This document shows positions 1,187 to 60,262 of a stretch of DNA of 64,000 nt, in pieces. Under the pieces are notes generated by a model. That model was not told where the DNA came from and did no database searches. It saw only the letters and a program-made list of their open reading frames with translations. Within the stretch, counting starts at the first letter, position 1. Each line of letters begins with the position of its first letter. The position numbers and the translations under genes were made by a program. Source of the stretch: Octopus sinensis (Eukaryota). The stretch spans positions 25,172,001 through 25,236,000 of the forward strand of contig NC_043001.1 of assembly GCF_006345805.1 (NCBI RefSeq), in the 5' to 3' direction.

Positions 1187-2403
1187 ATTCCAGAATTTTT
1201 CAGGAGACATTTATTGAAGTACAAACAATTTCCTTCAAAGTAAAATCTTCTAACTTCAATGCACATGTAGCACTCCAGCCACTACATGAAGGCCTCATGG
1301 ATGTCATCAAGTGAAGGTGTCCAGGACTTTTTGTCACAACCTCCTTCATCTTCCTATACCTTCAAAACAATTGCCCCTTAGGTTCTCCTTCAGCTTGGGA
1401 AACAAGCAAAAGCTACAAGGAGAAGGTCTGGACTGTAGGGAGGGTGAGGGATAGGTTTGATGCCCATCCTTGTCGAATAGTTGCTTACCAGCATGGAATT
1501 GTGGACTGGTGCATTATCTTGGTGCAGGTGCCACTGACCTAAGCGGAAGAGGTCTGGCCTTTTGCAACAAAATCTTTTCCTTAACTCCCTCAAATCTTTA
1601 ACAAAGTACTACTTGTTGGCCCCCCTGGTCAGAGGGAATCCAGTGGATGTAGGTGTTGCCCTTACTGTCAAAAAAGGAGATCATCACGAGTTTCCAGGTG
1701 AACTTGCTTTGCCTGGCCTTCTTGGGTCTGGGGGAGCCAGGATGCTTCCATTGGGCACTCTTGGTCTCTGGATCATGTCAGTAGATTCAGCTTTCATCAC
1801 AGGCTACCAGAAACTCGTGTTCTCTTGGATACTGTCACCAACACACTTTTCCCTTTCCCTGTTTATCACTGACCACCCTAGGAACAAACTTTGTACAAAT
1901 TCAGTGTACAGTTGTCACACCAACTCCAGACTGCATGCTTGTCTTAATAGACACATGATGGTCTTCATCTAGAAAATTGCAAACTTTCTCAACTAGCTCA
2001 GATGTTCCGACATCCCTCTCCCTACCACATTTCTCATTGTCTCTCACCTCTTCTCAAGTGTCCTTGACCTCATGCCACTGAAAAAACAGATACTCGGCTT
2101 TAGTGTATTTCATAAGTTTTCCGAACAATTTTACCCAGTTTAACACAAAACTTTATTGCATAGCAAGCTTCCAAATTGTCTTCAAATCCCAAATGCATTC
2201 TGCAAACTAGTCAGCTGCGACAAGCAGTGATCAGGAAGGTGTGTTCAAAGTGCTGTTGCAGCTGTTTCCTTCAATCTGAAATAAGAAAAAGTTGGCCGGT
2301 CAGCTTATTAGATGTATAGTAAAAATATGCTAAAATTACAACAATATAGAACAGTTATAGATGCCTCTCCTAAAAAAGTCTCAAAATTTCTAGAATGGAC
2401 CTC
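1187..2403 (-). mobile_element. Decayed mariner (Tc1/mariner) transposon
   Basis: Minus strand gives AIKFCVKLGK (about 2160), LHQDNAPVH and HPPYSPDL. TIR-like gaggtccattctagaaattttgagac at 2378-2403, with a partial counterpart at 1187-1212. Multiple stops. Confidence 0.9.
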
Positions 2404-4930: not shown

Positions 4931-5304
4931 GACTGGCATCCATGCTAGTGGAGCACTAAGAGCACCATCCGATTGGTTACCTGGCGTTCGTGCCGGTGGC
5001 ACGTAAAAAAGCACCATTCGAGCTTGATCGTTGACAGCGTCGCCTCACTGGCACTTGTGCCGGTGAAAAAGTAAAAAAATTTTTTTCGTGGCCATTGCCA
5101 GTACCACCTGACTAGCCCTCATGCCGGTAGCATGTTAAAGCACCCACTACACTCTCGGAGTGGTTGGCGTTAGGAAGGGCATCCAGCTGTAGAAACTGCC
5201 AGATCAAGATTGAAGCCTGGTGCAGCCATCTGGTTTGCCAGTCCTCAGTCAAATCGTCCAACCCATGCTAGCATGGAAAGCAGACATTAAACGATGATGA
5301 TGAT
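4931..5304 (+). mobile_element. 5'-truncated RTE-like LINE 3' UTR copy (family B)
   Basis: Tandem gtgccggtggcacgtaaaaagcacc units, conserved terminus ...ccaacccatgctagcatggaaag...ttaaac(gat)n. Same sequence follows ORF2 at 60420-61745. Confidence 0.9.
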
Positions 5305-5534
5305 TGCCTTTTGATATTAATACTGCTTGTCATTAATTATTTTTTAACAAGCCTGCCAGCTACCTGCAACATCAGTGCCTGTAAAGTCACTATAATTTGG
5401 TGTATCATAGGCAGCGAGATTTTCGCCGGTATGCATCAAGCGGACAACTGTCAATTAAGAGACACAGTACATTGAAATCACTTGGTCTAGACAATTCTCA
5501 TCTGCCAACAATATAAGTGTACTTTTATGTACCA

Positions 5535-5832
5535 CGGGCACCATTCGAGCATGATCGTTACCAACGTCGCCTTACTGGCACTTGTGCTGGTGGCATGTGT
5601 AAAAGGATTTGAGCAAGGTCGTTGCCAGTACCGCCAGACTGGCCCCCGTGCCAGTGGCACGTAAAAAGCACCCACTACACTCTCAGAGTGGTTAGCGTTA
5701 GGAAGGGCATCCAGCTGTAGAAACTCTGCCAAATCAAGATTGGAGCCTGGTGCAGCCATCTGGTTCGCCAGCCCTCAGTCAAAATCGTCCAACCCATGCT
5801 AGCATGGAAAGCGGATGTTAAACGATGATGAT
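5535..5832 (+). mobile_element. Family B RTE 3' UTR copy
   Basis: Same units and (gat)n tail. Confidence 0.9.
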
Positions 5833-6129
5833 TCATATAAGGTGAAAACTGCAGTGTTCAGTCTTCTAACAAAGCATCCATCTATGTTCAGCTGCATATA
5901 AAGACCACCTTTCAAATTTTCAATGTTTCAATACTAACAGAATTTTGGTTACAAAGTGTCTATTTAGGACACAATGCCGTCTGGATATAAAAATAGACAT
6001 TTCAAATAAAACAAATTTTATTTAAGACACATATTCAGCACACAAAAAAAAAACATTTATTGATAAACATCTGTTTTAGTTCATAACAAGTCTCGTATAC
6101 TTTTTGACATTTGGGATGGAATCAGCATT

Positions 6130-7728
6130 ACATTTTGAAGGTGAAAATGTGGCTTTACAAGTGCAACATTACATCTTTGATTTCTGAGTGTAGCCTGTGA
6201 GTCAAACCTTCACAGTAAACTGAAAAGTTGTACTGCATGCAGACTGATGTCTTCCTCCATAGGATGCAAAATCCGTATAGATCTTCAAAACTGCAACAGC
6301 TGAACACCATCAGAACTGGAAAAGAGGATTTGTACTGTTCTTTGATTTCTTTCAAAGTAACCAAGCAGACATTACAGTCACATCAAGAAAATAAATGAAG
6401 ACTGGCCACCACCACCTTTTCCTCTTGTATGTCTTGCTATCCATTGAGATAGCTGATCCACTTCCATCCCACGAAGGAGTTGTAATGGTTCATAGCAACT
6501 GGTTAAAGGACTTGTACACTGAGATTTTCCAGGGAAAATCGTTTTGTTCAGCCAATAATCGACAAATTACATTTTGTTGCTAAGGTGAGCACATTATTGC
6601 CATTATTTTATTGCAAATACAGTGGTTGTTGAAGAAATCTCAGTGCTTACTTTCATCTTCCTCAATGCTACAGTTTTTGGTAAAAGGGCAATTCCCAAAC
6701 CTAATTTCTCATATATATAGTTCCTAATGCACAAATACCAATTTCCGATAAGTGGATGAAAAGATCATAGGATGGTAAAATAATTATCAAAATATACTTT
6801 ATATCCAGATTTTTTTTGGCACATTTCCTTTATTGATCTAATTTACTAGTTTTTGATTTCAACACTTTTGTTGAACCCAATTGCTTTTCCTATATATATA
6901 TATATATATATTATTCAGTAACAGAACAGACACTTTTCTAACCCAAATCTAATATGTTGCTTGGTAAAGTAACAAACAAAATTAGAAATCCTGTATTCAT
7001 TAAGAGAAATATGTTCATCCAAAGTCTTCAGCTCAAGAAACTTTTTCCTAAGTGATCTAAAATTGGTTCTATACTGGATAAACTGTTTGCATAATCCTTC
7101 AAATAAGTAAGATACAGAACATCTTCAAAATGATTATATTGGATTAGAATCCATCAACTTAAATGTCTTTCTCAGGTGACGAATAGGTCCTTTTACTAGC
7201 AGATTTAGAAACACCAGATAGCAAAAGTCCTCTAGACATCATCCATATTTCATTATCAGATGCATTCAAGGTGGTGTTTTTCTGATAAGCATAAAGGATA
7301 GTCTGATGAAGGATATTCTGGGAAAATGGCTTTATCAAATATAAGTTTAAAAACTTCTGCCTCTAATTCACTTAATAGGAAAAATTCTGGCACTGGTTTC
7401 GAAACAGTGTTAAATACATTTATATCAAATACTGGTACAGTTTTTTTCTCCCATTTCAGGTTTTTATCTGTTTTGTTGACTAACAGATTTGGGTATACTT
7501 ACAGTTTCCTCTTCATTGACATCGTTCGTTCCTTTTGGCACGAAATCACACTGAGTTTCTCGGCAGTTCACTTCTTCCTAAACCATTCACTGGATCAGTG
7601 GAATCATCTTCAGAATCATCATGTTCGATTACCCTTTTCTACTTCGGGAATAAGGAGTGCAATGTCAAGTAGTGAAGTTTCTATCATCGCCTTCTTCTGG
7701 AATTTCCGAAACCTGATGCATATTCAAT
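6130..7728 (-). pseudogene. piggyBac (PGBD-like) transposase pseudogene
   Basis: Minus-strand motifs in canonical order: acidic N-terminus DDSEDDS, GLLLSG (7213-7229), HIRFG (6942-6956), KVYFDNYFT (6774-6800), GICALGTI, YNSFVG/EVDQ (decayed YNxxMGGVD), KRWWWPVFIYFLDV (6380-6425), and a decayed Cys-rich end. Many stops and frameshifts, and a (TA)n insertion at 6891-6912. Confidence 0.9.
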
Positions 7729-7989
7729 CTGGAAAATAAAAAAAACAAAGTCATTCTGATAGTAACGTAAACATGTCCAAAGACCGGTCGTAGGGTCTGC
7801 AACTTATTACTCAACCAACATAACTTCAGAGTCCTGATTCCAAGACACATAAATCATGATACCAAAAACCACCTATGGATTGACAAACAAATATTTTTAT
7901 GACTGCGTATTTTTACACTTTTTTTGTAAACTCCCAAATGATTATCAGTAAATAGTTAAGTTGAAAATTACTACAAAAGCCCTTCTTAC

Positions 7990-8024
7990 CTGTCAATGAA
8001 AACACTTGTTGACTGTGACGCCAT
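7990..8024 (-). CDS. Short first coding exon MASQSTSVFID(R) of a minus-strand transcript
   Basis: ATG at 8024, donor ACAG|GTAAG at 7990/7989. Joins in frame to acceptor ttttattttccag|A at 7728, giving MASQSTSVFIDRLNMHQVSEIPEEGDD. Confidence 0.55.
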
Positions 8025-8362
8025 ATTGGAAGCGGCATGCAGAATAAAAGAGTTATTCATTAAATTCTATAGATAGAAAACAGTTTAAATGTTAACTGAA
8101 ACAAAATATAGATAATTACAAGTCGTAATTATTTGGTAGTTTATAATTTGGTGACGATCGTATTTTCTTAGTAAACAAACGAATTTAATGAGCAAAGTTG
8201 CTATTCCAAGGGAAATCTCGCGTGTGTTTGCGAGAGAGAACGAGAGTGAGATCTTGTGATGGCTGTCGTTATTGATATAACGGCGGTAAGTTGAGCGAGT
8301 GTTGGGAGGGAAGGAAGCCACAATAAAGTGTGTGAGCGACTGAACCAATCCCTCGCACGCAA
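8025..8362. promoter_or_regulatory. Candidate bidirectional promoter / 5' UTR region
   Basis: CpG-rich relative to flanks and free of repeats. Lies between divergent ATGs (8024 minus, 8363 plus). YY1-like AATATGGCG and ETS-like GGAAGCGG at 8018-8035. Confidence 0.55.
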
Positions 8363-9257
8363 ATGGACGATCAATTGAAAGTGGTACACGGAGGCGTAGC
8401 CCAAACAAACACAACAACAGACAGTCCCGGGGCTCCCACCACCAGTAGTCCCTTTCCGAAGGAGGATAATACCGACAGGACTACGTCGAGCACCAGCAGT
8501 TGCGATTGTGTTGTTGTCACAAACGCGGCTGCAGTAGACACGGTACTTAGCGAAAATGGCAAAGACAGCGAGGCTAAAGTCTCGAGCTTCGATGTAACTA
8601 GCAACAACACGACATCGTGCATGTCAAGCAACACAGTCGCTAGTACTACATTGACAACAACCACAACAACAGGCTCACCATCAACATTCACTGCTTCAGA
8701 TACAGCAGGGTCTGATTCCTCGTTAGACCACCGTCTATCCGAGTGTAACATAAATAAAAATGAAGATGGAAATGACAATGTTCCCGATAAAAATCCCTTG
8801 TTGGAGGTAGGATTAGGATCAATGCAGCCCGTTATGGAATCTAATAAAGCTATAATGAAAAATTCTACTTCGAATGAAATGGAAACGAGTAAGAAGTCTG
8901 ATAATGCAAATAATCATGTCAGTGTTAATCACCCTGGATCTCCCGATTCTGGTGGTGTAGAACTAACTTCAGCTATGCAACAACAAGGAAAACATGAACA
9001 TTCTAGAGAACAACAACCTGTCATTAAACAACCACTGTTGTCGTCAGATGGTCGTTCTACTTCACAGATTGCCGAGCAGAACACCACTCAGAGTTGGAAC
9101 AAAACATCTGAAGCAGGAATGGAGGAAAGCAACAATGTGGAGCGACAACTGTCGCGAACCACCTGTCCGCAGGCTGTACCTTTGGAGACGATACCTATAC
9201 CTGGTGATCACGAACAGTCAAGAATAACCCTCAACAAAAACCAAACAAACGTGCAAG
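8363..9257 (+). CDS. First coding exon of an unidentified host gene; Ser/Thr/Asn-rich, probably disordered N-terminus (298 codons + 1 nt)
   Basis: By far the longest ORF, unique and CpG-containing. In-frame upstream stop at 8333-8335. Donor CAAG|GTGGGT at 9257/9258 (phase 1) just before the ORF stop. No recognisable domain. Confidence 0.75.
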
Positions 9258-10086
9258 GTGGGTAGATTATAGCAGCATTATTACAATTTCTACTGTGAGA
9301 TATTTCGACCCTTGTGTTTACGTCATCAACATTATTCGTGCCTATTTTCCGTAGTTCAACTTAAGTTCTCCTTTCGTTTACACCTTACATTATTATTCTC
9401 CTCTTTAATATATATTTATATAACCATATGTATATATATATACTTCAATATATCTCCTTCGACACAGTTATTATTTGTGTATTCTTTTAACACATTAGAT
9501 TCTCGAAACTTGCCATGGTTAAAAATTTTTTAAAAAAGTCATTATCATGTATATTTCTATTTTATTTCTTTCTTGCCTTCGTTTTACCTTTACTTATAAT
9601 CGGTTTCATATTTCGATTTACTGTTCAAGTTGTTACTCAATGGACGGCTTCTATCATATAATTAAACTCTATATATATTCTAGGACCTCATCTTTGTTTA
9701 TTCCATGCACAACTGTTCCCCTTCGAACCCAATGCAACCATCTCGATACGTACCTTTTACCACGTATGAATAAAAACAATAAAATACTTCAACCAGATGC
9801 AAAATTAAACCATGCTAGTTGCAAATTTTGCAGTAGGTTAAAGTTGCTTTTTTTTTTTACCTAACAAAATACGAATAAGAGATACCTTGATGTGTTTTTA
9901 TCTGACACCAAATAAATTCTATCCATAGTTTTATTATTCTTCCTCATTAAACTTACAGCGTGACTTAAAACACTGTACTCATTATTTGGAGGCTTTACGT
10001 TAAAAAAGAAATACTATAGATGTGTAAATTATACACTTAAAGAGTTCTCTACTATAAAACACTTTCTTTTACACTGTCTTCAATAA

Positions 10087-10106
10087 CTGCGCAGGAAATC
10101 TTTCAT

Positions 10107-10141
<35 letters not shown>

Positions 10142-28987: not shown

Positions 28988-29400
28988 ATGATGATGGCCG
29001 TCCACTTGTGACCGAGGAAGACCATTGCCAACCTTCAGGAACATAATGCGCTCTAGGACTAACTTATATTTTGCATTTGCGGCTCCGTTGGTGGCTAATT
29101 AGCCCTGCTCTTGACAAGCATACACGACTGCAAACATTGCAGACCAAGCTTTCCCCATTCACTATACGAGCCGTGCGCTTTCGCGCAGCTCGCTTAAGTT
29201 CTTCATGCTGGATACGTGTTCTCTCAAAAGTGTCGATCCCCTTCTTAACTTGCTTCCTCCATCTGTGGCGATGACAGGCATTGTTCTCCCCGTCAGCGTC
29301 CTGCATATCACAGGCCTTTAATGAGGACTTGACACAGTCCTTAAATCGCAGCCTTGGTTTCTGCCGGAGTCTCCTTCCATTCACAAGTTCTCTATATGCA
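28988..29400 (-). mobile_element. RTE/BovB-type LINE 3' fragment
   Basis: YRELVNGRRLRQKPRLRFKDCVKSSLK...WRKQVKKG...CNVCSRVCLSRAGLISHQR is typical of an RTE ORF2 C-terminus. Confidence 0.88.
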
Positions 29401-30155
29401 TGATACATACATACATACATACATACATACAAACAAACAGAGAAAGAAATCAACCAACCGACTTGTTCATTGATGGGTTAGAAATTTATATTTCACTCTT
29501 GGTGTTGGGTACTCTGAGTAAAGCTTTGAAGTTTACTCTCTTTTATATATCATCTGAGAGAGCAGTTAAAAAAAAAAGAATCAAAATGACAGCTTGAGGA
29601 TGAAGCGCTAAACTAACTAGAATCAAATTTGTAGTTTGTTGGTTTATAGCACCCAGATCAATTCAGTTTTCTCGTCTGATTAGCATGATTTAATAAATCC
29701 TATTTTATAGTCTACTTAACTTACCCAGTGTCGCCCTATCTATCATGTAAATAGTTATGGTTCACATTGTCGTTGAAGCTTTCAGTGTAAAACTTTTTTT
29801 TTATGTTAAATTTACCTTGATCTAATGTATCATTTTCGGTTTTTTTTTTTAATGATAACCAGTTTTCACACTTCGTATTTGCACATATCACCATCAGCAT
29901 CATTTAACATCCACTTTTCCATGCTTGTATGGGTTGGACAGAATTTGTTGATGTAGATTTTCTACGGCTAGATGTCTTTCCTGTAGCCATCCTCACATGT
30001 TTCCTAGTAAGATTATGTTTTCCCAGAGCTAAGCATAGTTTTCCCATGAAAGACTGAAACCAAATGACCTTGCTTGTATGGTGATGATGCACATTTACAA
30101 CCATCACATGATATCAAGACAAGGTACACACACACACATACACTTCCGTATATTC

Positions 30156-34365: not shown

Positions 34366-34411
<46 letters not shown>

Positions 34412-59782: not shown

Positions 59783-59908
59783 TCGACCACATGGTTCTGG
59801 GTTCAGTCATACTGTGTGACACCTTGGGTAAGTGTCTTCTGCTGTAGCCCCAGCCTAACCAATGCCTTGTTAGTGGAACTGGTTGATGGAAATTGTAAGA
59901 AGACCATC

Positions 59909-59945
<37 letters not shown>

Positions 59946-60262
59946 ATTCAAACTTGAACAAAGAGAAAACACAACAACGCGAGGACGTGGAACAAGTATA
60001 GTGTTATTGGATGCTCAGGAAAGGAAAGATATATATATATATCTGTGTGTATCATTGTGTCCATGTTTGTCCTCCACCACTGCTTGATAACAGGTGTTGG
60101 TGTGCTTACATCCACATAAGTTAGTGGTTCGGCAGAAGAAACTGATAGAATAAGTACCAGGTTTTTAAAACAAAAGTACCAAGGTCAATTTGTTCAGCTA
60201 AGTTTCTTCAAAGCAGTGCCCCAGTATGGTCACTAATGACTGAAACAAGTAAAGGATAAAAT
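59783..60262 (+). mobile_element. Diverged SINE family A with an about 90-bp insert in its (TA)n tract
   Basis: Family A halves flank 59941-60029, which itself is bounded by (TA)n. Confidence 0.75.

Follow-up and report, generated by a model that had tools for sequence, protein, structure and literature searches.

What is a piggyBac transposase doing directly behind what looks like the first exon of a host gene? The question comes from a preliminary description of the window, i.e., the whole stretch of 64,000 nucleotides of Octopus sinensis DNA that was analyzed, which had proposed that a piggyBac transposase on the minus strand, possibly a pseudogene, is wired as a spliced exon that follows a short, host-like exon with an ATG. 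We recovered this layout. The transposase part is an old, heavily decayed gene of the piggyBac superfamily (7728-6056, minus strand) whose protein can no longer be made, and its features are as follows.

6056 to 7728, minus strand: piggyBac-like transposase pseudogene, acidic in its N-terminal region and Cys-rich in its C-terminal tail, with a DDE_Tnp_1_7 domain

7719 to 7721, minus strand: first in-frame ATG of the transposase open reading frame (ORF), with a splice acceptor 7 nt upstream

6349 to 7172, minus strand: DDE_Tnp_1_7 core, placed by frameshift-aware algorithmic alignment, with the motifs ISLNEY, VYFDNYFT, VDQLSQ and RKRWWWPVFIYFLDVTVMSAWLL

6890 to 6914, no strand assigned: (TA)n microsatellite that interrupts the transposase remnant

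5675 to 5836, minus strand: first of a cluster of SINE-like copies, adjoining the remnant on its 3' side; the window has at least 13 members of this family

A translation of the region stitched by eye from 22 pieces matched the Pfam profile PF13843 with E=7.7e-18 over profile positions 3-349. The stitching had been steered by known piggyBac motifs, and we therefore built an independent alignment test, a protein-to-DNA local aligner that admits frameshifts, with residues 106-459 of piggyBat (PDB 9c0f) as the guide. At every frameshift penalty tried, the minus-strand tile 6000-7800 scored best of 69 (z 3.3-5.6), and a shuffle outscored it in 1 of 60 cases, at one setting. The traceback translations of 7172-6349 matched PF13843 (E=1e-11 and 6.8e-10, profile positions 81-349), while none of eight equally optimised controls, the 4 best tiles and the 4 best shuffles, did so at E<=1. 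Because the traceback translations match the profile while the controls do not, the piggyBac homology of this minus-strand region is real.

For the N-terminal third of the domain there is less evidence than for 7172-6349: a two-piece join with one junction reached E=0.011 (profile positions 3-56) and a four-piece join E=5e-5 (3-138), and a frameshift-aware alignment of piggyBat residues 1-110 with 7100-7560 was not significant. Upstream of the domain, 7728-7360, the first ~120 codons, gave no family match. The N terminus of piggyBac transposases is typically acidic and poorly conserved, so that a missing match over 7721-7360 is expected, and its length is about right. The preliminary description had set the acceptor exactly at the start of the PGBD homology; in the hand-stitched translation, family-level homology instead runs from ~7360, with the algorithmic alignment backing 7172-6349 alone, and the acceptor marks the start of the ORF, ~120 codons ahead of the domain.

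The homology is visible only with frameshift-aware, family-guided alignment. Pfam searches with three single frames, with ten separate in-frame pieces, with the longest-ORF chain, and with a stop-avoiding frame path built without protein knowledge all returned no piggyBac match. The tblastn scores of Trichoplusia ni (T. ni) piggyBac and piggyBat against the window were at noise level, phmmer of the stitched protein against PDB gave no piggyBac match, and BLASTP of the same protein against T. ni piggyBac gave marginal collinear HSPs only. As a guide in the frameshift-aware alignment, T. ni piggyBac (its sequence checked against PDB 6x67: 1363 bits, residues 1-594) was not significant. The remnant belongs to the same DDE_Tnp_1_7 fold family as piggyBat (PDB 9c0f) and T. 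ni piggyBac (PDB 6x67), shares their Cys-rich tail and has motifs collinear with theirs (LSLDE/ISLNE, MDNYY/FDNYF, GVDxxDQ/VDQLSQ and KW..L...LD/WWWPVFIYFLD, piggyBat and T. ni piggyBac before the slash), whereas its pairwise similarity to them by ordinary BLAST or phmmer is at noise level and the signal comes from piggyBat alone.

The coding capacity of the remnant is gone. The hand-stitched path over the transposase contains about 21 or more frame changes and ~12 stops, the first of them a TGA at 7667-7665, and the algorithmic path contains 13-23 frame changes in 824 nt. Keeping the region open takes 16 frame switches, a number within the 12-20 needed by random stretches of the window, and its frame is thus as closed as that of random DNA. 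An N has replaced the first catalytic D (ISLNEY, compared with LSLDEG in piggyBat), and the second and third are kept (FDNYF and VDQLSQ); the remnant therefore has neither an intact DDD triad nor an open reading frame. In a large protein search, the stitched protein with its spliced N terminus had 0 matches, and joining every ORF of 38 aa or more from 5840-7800 into one query also gave 0 matches, even at E<=10. Exact look-ups of ORFs of the window returned nothing, and its conserved 27-28-mers found no match in metagenome scans.

The preliminary description had also reported that no 5' terminal inverted repeat (TIR) is visible, and our searches for TIRs and for a TTAA duplication agree with it. 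No inverted repeat bracketing the ORF was found, and the best TTAA-flanked inverted ends among all TTAA pairs matched at 6/13 positions. The motif CCCTACGACC had no inverted partner, and CCCTACGACCGGTC at 7795-7782, considered as a 5' TIR, was rejected for want of one. The SINE-like copies at the 3' flank, whose families look octopus-like, may have removed a 3' end of the element. The 64-kb window holds no second copy of the piggyBac remnant.

Upstream of the transposase ORF, the candidate splice is made of two features.

7990 to 8024, minus strand: candidate first exon, with its ATG in the context AATATGG, 11 codons plus 2 nt (MASQSTSVFID-R), ending in CAG|GTAAG

7729 to 7989, minus strand: candidate intron of 261 nt, whose last 20 nt are a polypyrimidine tract and CAG acceptor, TTGTTTTTTTTATTTTCCAG

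The minus-strand segment 8024-7990 reads ATGGCGTCACAGTCAACAAGTGTTTTCATTGACAG (35 nt, ATGGCG...GACAG) and is followed by GTAAG, and its ATG has a good -3A/+4G context. Exon, donor and intron are all where the preliminary description placed them. Joining 7990 to 7728 gives MASQSTSVFIDR|LNMHQVSEIPEEGDDRNFTT and a frame that meets the TGA at 7667-7665, 21 codons past the junction, in agreement with the in-frame run of about 20 codons claimed earlier; the hypothetical spliced reading is 32 aa long. A second ATTGAA acceptor, at 2275, was considered as an "exon 2" and rejected: spliced to exon 1 it reaches a stop after 10 codons, and a mariner remnant lies behind it.

Signals of this quality are rare in the window, as judged by criteria that were set after the case had been seen. 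Across its 64 kb, the minus strand offers 12 AG|GTRAG donors and just 2 acceptors that combine YAG with 13/14 pyrimidines or more. Such an acceptor stands no more than 12 nt upstream of 2 of the 2,751 ATGs on both strands of the window, and 1 of the 2,751, that of the transposase ORF, has in addition a mini-exon no more than 1 kb away that brings an in-frame ATG and a donor. Because such signals are so rare here, the acceptor at 7728 is unlikely to be an accident.

The locus may be a plain intergenic or intronic piggyBac fossil: the ATG...CAG|GTAAG segment would have arisen by coincidence in AT-rich sequence close to a promoter, no splice would ever have joined it to the element, and the acceptor and AATAAA would simply be generic signals that the element carries. 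We consider this account unlikely, though a serious contender. At 7 donors per 64 kb, a minus-strand mini-exon with an ATG and a donor of this kind would occur by chance within 1 kb in ~10% of cases and in frame in ~3-4%, and an ORF as closed as random DNA is what a plain fossil would have. Against it, the configuration is unique in the window and the ATG has the good context described above.

The end of the ORF carries the third element of the layout.

6061 to 6056 and 6022 to 6017, minus strand: two AATAAA, a candidate poly(A) signal at the ORF end, with a T/GT-rich run at 6055-6027 after the first

Both AATAAA reported earlier at 6056-6061 and 6017-6022 on the minus strand are present, and TGTTTTTTTTTGTGTG follows directly after the one at 6061-6056. 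On its own, AATAAA says little, because the minus strand of the window has 111 of them, ~1 per 577 nt.

Acceptor and poly(A) signal have a precedent within the family. piggyBac elements themselves, such as PGBD3 (7 nt) and moth piggyBac, bring along a splice acceptor a few nucleotides upstream of their first Met and a poly(A) signal past the end of their ORF (PMC2268245; PMC5381638), and piggyBac has been modeled as a "natural 3'-terminal exon trap" (Newman et al. 2008, PMC2268245). The remnant has the same arrangement as PGBD3, namely, an acceptor just before the first Met (13/14 pyrimidines plus CAG, 7 nt away) and a poly(A) motif after the ORF. By this analogy, both signals are most likely the element's own, as family traits, which also agrees with the account of a plain fossil. 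The remnant is an ordinary piggyBac fossil, of a kind already known, in which the signals for splicing in and for polyadenylation that are usual in the family have been retained.

The closest known layout is CSB-PGBD3 in intron 5 of primate ERCC6, which like the locus has a single-exon ORF with a polypyrimidine/AG acceptor placed 7 nt ahead of its first Met, a poly(A) signal that follows the ORF and, upstream, a donor in the same frame. Unlike in CSB-PGBD3, the ORF is destroyed and a fusion protein is impossible; the upstream partner is a 35-nt candidate first exon rather than five exons of a known gene; and TIRs, MER85-like arms or a TTAA duplication are not visible. PGBD3-related pseudogenes and PBLE fossils likewise have a degenerate, nonfunctional ORF with acceptor and poly(A) motifs still present. 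Compared with the human PGBD3-related pseudogenes, which are 88-90% identical, the remnant is far more decayed and lies directly behind a conserved promoter-proximal segment with an ATG and a donor.

Mammalian PGBD1 and PGBD2, which also have host 5' exons (PMC2268245; PMC5381638), share with the proposed layout one or more short upstream exons spliced to one large transposase-derived terminal exon, and the loss of the transposon ends, but their ORFs have stayed intact and evolve under purifying selection (Ka/Ks 0.12-0.43; PMC5381638), whereas the remnant is a pseudogene. Their architecture is also that of a further reading, put forward in the preliminary description, in which a once-domesticated PGBD gene made of exon 1 and the transposase exon was selected for a time and pseudogenised later. 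The loss of TIRs and TTAA, together with the retention of a position near a host promoter and of an in-frame upstream exon, would agree with such a history. However, age and the SINE insertions in the 3' flank would account equally well for the missing TIRs, and the acceptor and poly(A) signal are no evidence for domestication because they are published properties of piggyBac elements. Instead of an intact syntenic ORF under purifying selection, we found an ORF saturated with lesions that has lost the first catalytic D; the protein searches retrieved no intact ortholog or paralog, and no positive sign of past constraint appeared. Past domestication therefore gained no positive support, and we regard it as highly improbable.

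The host context of the candidate exon was examined by comparison with a related species. Three further features come into play.

8363 to 9265, plus strand: neighboring divergent host coding exon, a Ser/Thr-rich ORF of 300 aa used in the ortholog comparison

8207 to 8362, no strand assigned: highly conserved block, 154/156 nt (98.7%) identical to the relative (P ~1e-11), presumed promoter or 5' untranslated region (5'UTR)

8025 to 8120, minus strand: region upstream of the candidate exon, 88.5% identical, with a 34-nt identical run and the TATA-like CTATAGAA and TATATTTT

The 300-aa ORF had 1 match in the large protein search, and its ortholog was found on short Logan contigs from two SRA runs, SRR11869394 and SRR11869384. 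With 80% protein identity, all indels in frame and a dN/dS of 0.66, the plus-strand ORF is a real coding exon. Two contigs of the related species (L001 and L002) span both the candidate exon and this neighboring gene, and L001 was aligned to 7773-10132. Identity to the relative was 83.6% in the available part of the intron (7773-7989), which is about neutral, 79.8% in 8121-8206, 91.2% in the plus-strand ORF and 79-83% downstream of it. Conservation was tested against the pooled neutral identity of 81.6%. The block at 8207-8362, the presumed promoter or 5'UTR, matched no Rfam family and may be bidirectional.

Both contigs keep the ATG, the 35-nt length and a donor, GTGAG, with one synonymous change and one I>V. 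The contiguity of the candidate exon with the neighboring gene in the relative fits a host exon, as far as the sequence goes. Exon 1, described earlier as host-like, is kept in the relative beside the same gene, but its conservation alone (32/35 identical, 91.4%) is not significant (P=0.09). The account of a chance match draws on the same figure, and on a probability of ~0.36 (P) that the ATG and the GT are both kept by chance. It is at odds with the exon plus its 96 upstream nt, which exceed neutral conservation (117/131 identical versus 81.6%, P=0.012), and with the position of the segment ~180 nt from the 98.7%-conserved block, beside a divergent gene.

On its other side, the contig of the relative ends at the match to 7772, within the first part of a dispersed SINE that is absent from this place in the window, and so stops 44 nt short of where an acceptor and a piggyBac part would lie. 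Most probably, a SINE inserted there in one lineage, and the assembly broke inside the repeat. Two other possibilities were considered and discarded: a remnant of the relative's SINE at 7772 in the window aligned no better than shuffles, and, had piggyBac inserted into a TTAA of that SINE, the remainder of the SINE should lie nearby, but it was not found within 3 kb.

The lesions give an estimate of the age of the insertion. Neutral segments carry, pairwise, 0.015 frameshifting indels per nt, and the number expected per lineage since the split is ~12.5 in 1670 nt and ~6 in 824 nt; about 21 or more and 13-23, respectively, were observed. On this rough count, the frameshift load is about double the expectation, and the ORF has been decaying about twice as long as the two species have been separate. 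The insertion therefore probably predates the split, and the relative should probably carry the element too. As the decay is older than the split, any present constraint on exon 1 cannot come from a fusion protein.

An insertion that probably preceded the split also means that part of the "intron", and even "exon 1", could be the 5' arm of the element. A typical piggyBac 5' arm measures 100-330 nt, and that of moth piggyBac is roughly 300 nt; an arm of the element could reach into or past the "intron" and even cover "exon 1". In the fullest form of this alternative, the 35-nt segment and the 261-nt spacer are the element's own 5' arm, a promoter and leader, and the relative carries the old insertion. 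It would agree with the 5' arm of PGBD3, 100 nt or more (PMC2268245), and with Octopus vulgaris, where piggyBac families are abundant (474 recent insertions amounting to 3.67 Mb) and the copies long (PMC13282606). The decay estimate, the neutral evolution of the "intron" and the lack of a visible boundary between host and element from 7729 to 8206 point the same way. However, none of the candidate boundaries has a TTAA or TIR, and 7990-8120 is somewhat above neutral conservation. We judge an element-borne exon and intron rather improbable.

The explanation that we tentatively prefer, with slightly less than even confidence, is that a piggyBac fossil with intrinsic exon-trap signals came to lie behind a promoter-proximal segment with an ATG and a donor, whose transcripts were spliced into the element and terminated there. 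Minus-strand transcripts would start near 8030-8200, at the conserved divergent promoter region; a splice would join the donor at 7990 to the acceptor that the element provides at 7728, and the transcripts would terminate at its poly(A) signal. While the element was intact, its transposase would have been expressed from the host promoter with 14 extra N-terminal residues; today, the product would be a peptide of at most 32 aa or a noncoding terminal exon. In this explanation, we infer both the host origin of exon 1 and the use of the splice at any time.

A variant goes further and takes exon 1 for a true host first exon, divergent from the block at 8207-8362, to which the dead piggyBac still supplies an alternative last exon (7990>7728, poly(A) at ~6040) in a premature-termination or long noncoding RNA isoform that regulates the gene. 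We find it improbable. If true, it would give CSB-PGBD3 a counterpart in an invertebrate, apparently a cephalopod, where the element's signals for RNA processing have survived its protein.

What the locus means for piggyBac biology depends on the splice. If it is not real, the remnant is one more transposon fossil, of use for repeat and gene annotation alone, at a locus where automated gene prediction might report a two-exon "PGBD-like" gene by mistake. With a real splice, the locus would be a further independent capture of a host promoter and first exon by piggyBac signals, outside vertebrates, and it would indicate that such RNA signals can persist long after the death of the transposase.

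Besides the piggyBac remnant, a decayed transposase pseudogene, the window contains the following repeats:

~1500-2275, minus strand: decayed mariner-type transposase, with motifs AIKFCVKLGK, a DETWIY-like motif and PETKSAQWKHPGSPRPKK
5112-5836 and at least 12 other sites: SINE-like family containing GCACCAGGCTCCAATCTTGATTTGGCAGAG, at least 13 copies
SINE-like family with the head CTCTTTTACTTGTTTCAGTCATTTGACTGCGGCCATGCTGG, at least 6 copies
6890-6914, 10105-10138, 34374-34405 and 59906-59950: (TA)n microsatellites

The match of the mariner-type remnant to Pfam Transposase_1 fell below the cut-off (E=0.0018). This remnant is preceded by an acceptor-like sequence at 2275, tttttcttatttcag followed by ATTGAA, and these first six exon bases are identical to those at the splice acceptor of the piggyBac remnant. 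Both SINE-like families are abundant in the window, and a cluster of GCACCAGGCTCCAATCTTGATTTGGCAGAG copies adjoins the 3' flank of the piggyBac remnant. A related species carries a CTCTTTTACTTGTTTCAGTCATTTGACTGCGGCCATGCTGG-family copy (positions 1-32 of its contig L001) at the position matching 7772; at that position the window itself lacks it. One (TA)n microsatellite (6890-6914) interrupts the transposase remnant; another coincides with the point where L001 ends.

The window also contains three ORFs and a conserved block:

7326-7739, plus strand: antisense ORF, 137 aa from ATG, 145 codons from stop to stop
29064-29453, minus strand: ORF of 129 aa with a C2H2-like motif at its end (CNVCSRVCLSRAGLISHQRS)
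8363-9265, plus strand: Ser/Thr-rich ORF of 300 aa
8207-8362: conserved block of 156 nt, between the candidate minus exon (a 35-nt ATG segment with a donor) and the Ser/Thr-rich ORF

The ORF at 7326-7739, the longest of the piggyBac locus, runs antisense to the N-terminal region of the transposase. A protein database search found no homolog, an exact sequence look-up returned no match on record, and this is probably a chance antisense ORF. The ORF at 29064-29453 resembles the tail end of a protein encoded by a retroelement.

The Ser/Thr-rich ORF is a real coding exon that is evolving fast. It shares 80% identity with its ortholog in the related species, none of the seven indels between the two shifts the reading frame, and the dN/dS ratio is 0.66 for a dS of 0.13. 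No domain was found in a Pfam search, and no annotated homolog among 5.8 billion proteins searched.

Immediately upstream, the conserved block is 98.7% identical between the window and the related species, compared with ∼82% for neutral DNA. No Rfam family matched it. On the plus strand, the block contains a mini-ORF, ATGGCTGTCGTTATTGATATAACGGCG, followed by a strong donor, GTAAGT. The block could be a promoter/5'UTR or else an upstream first exon of the plus-strand gene.
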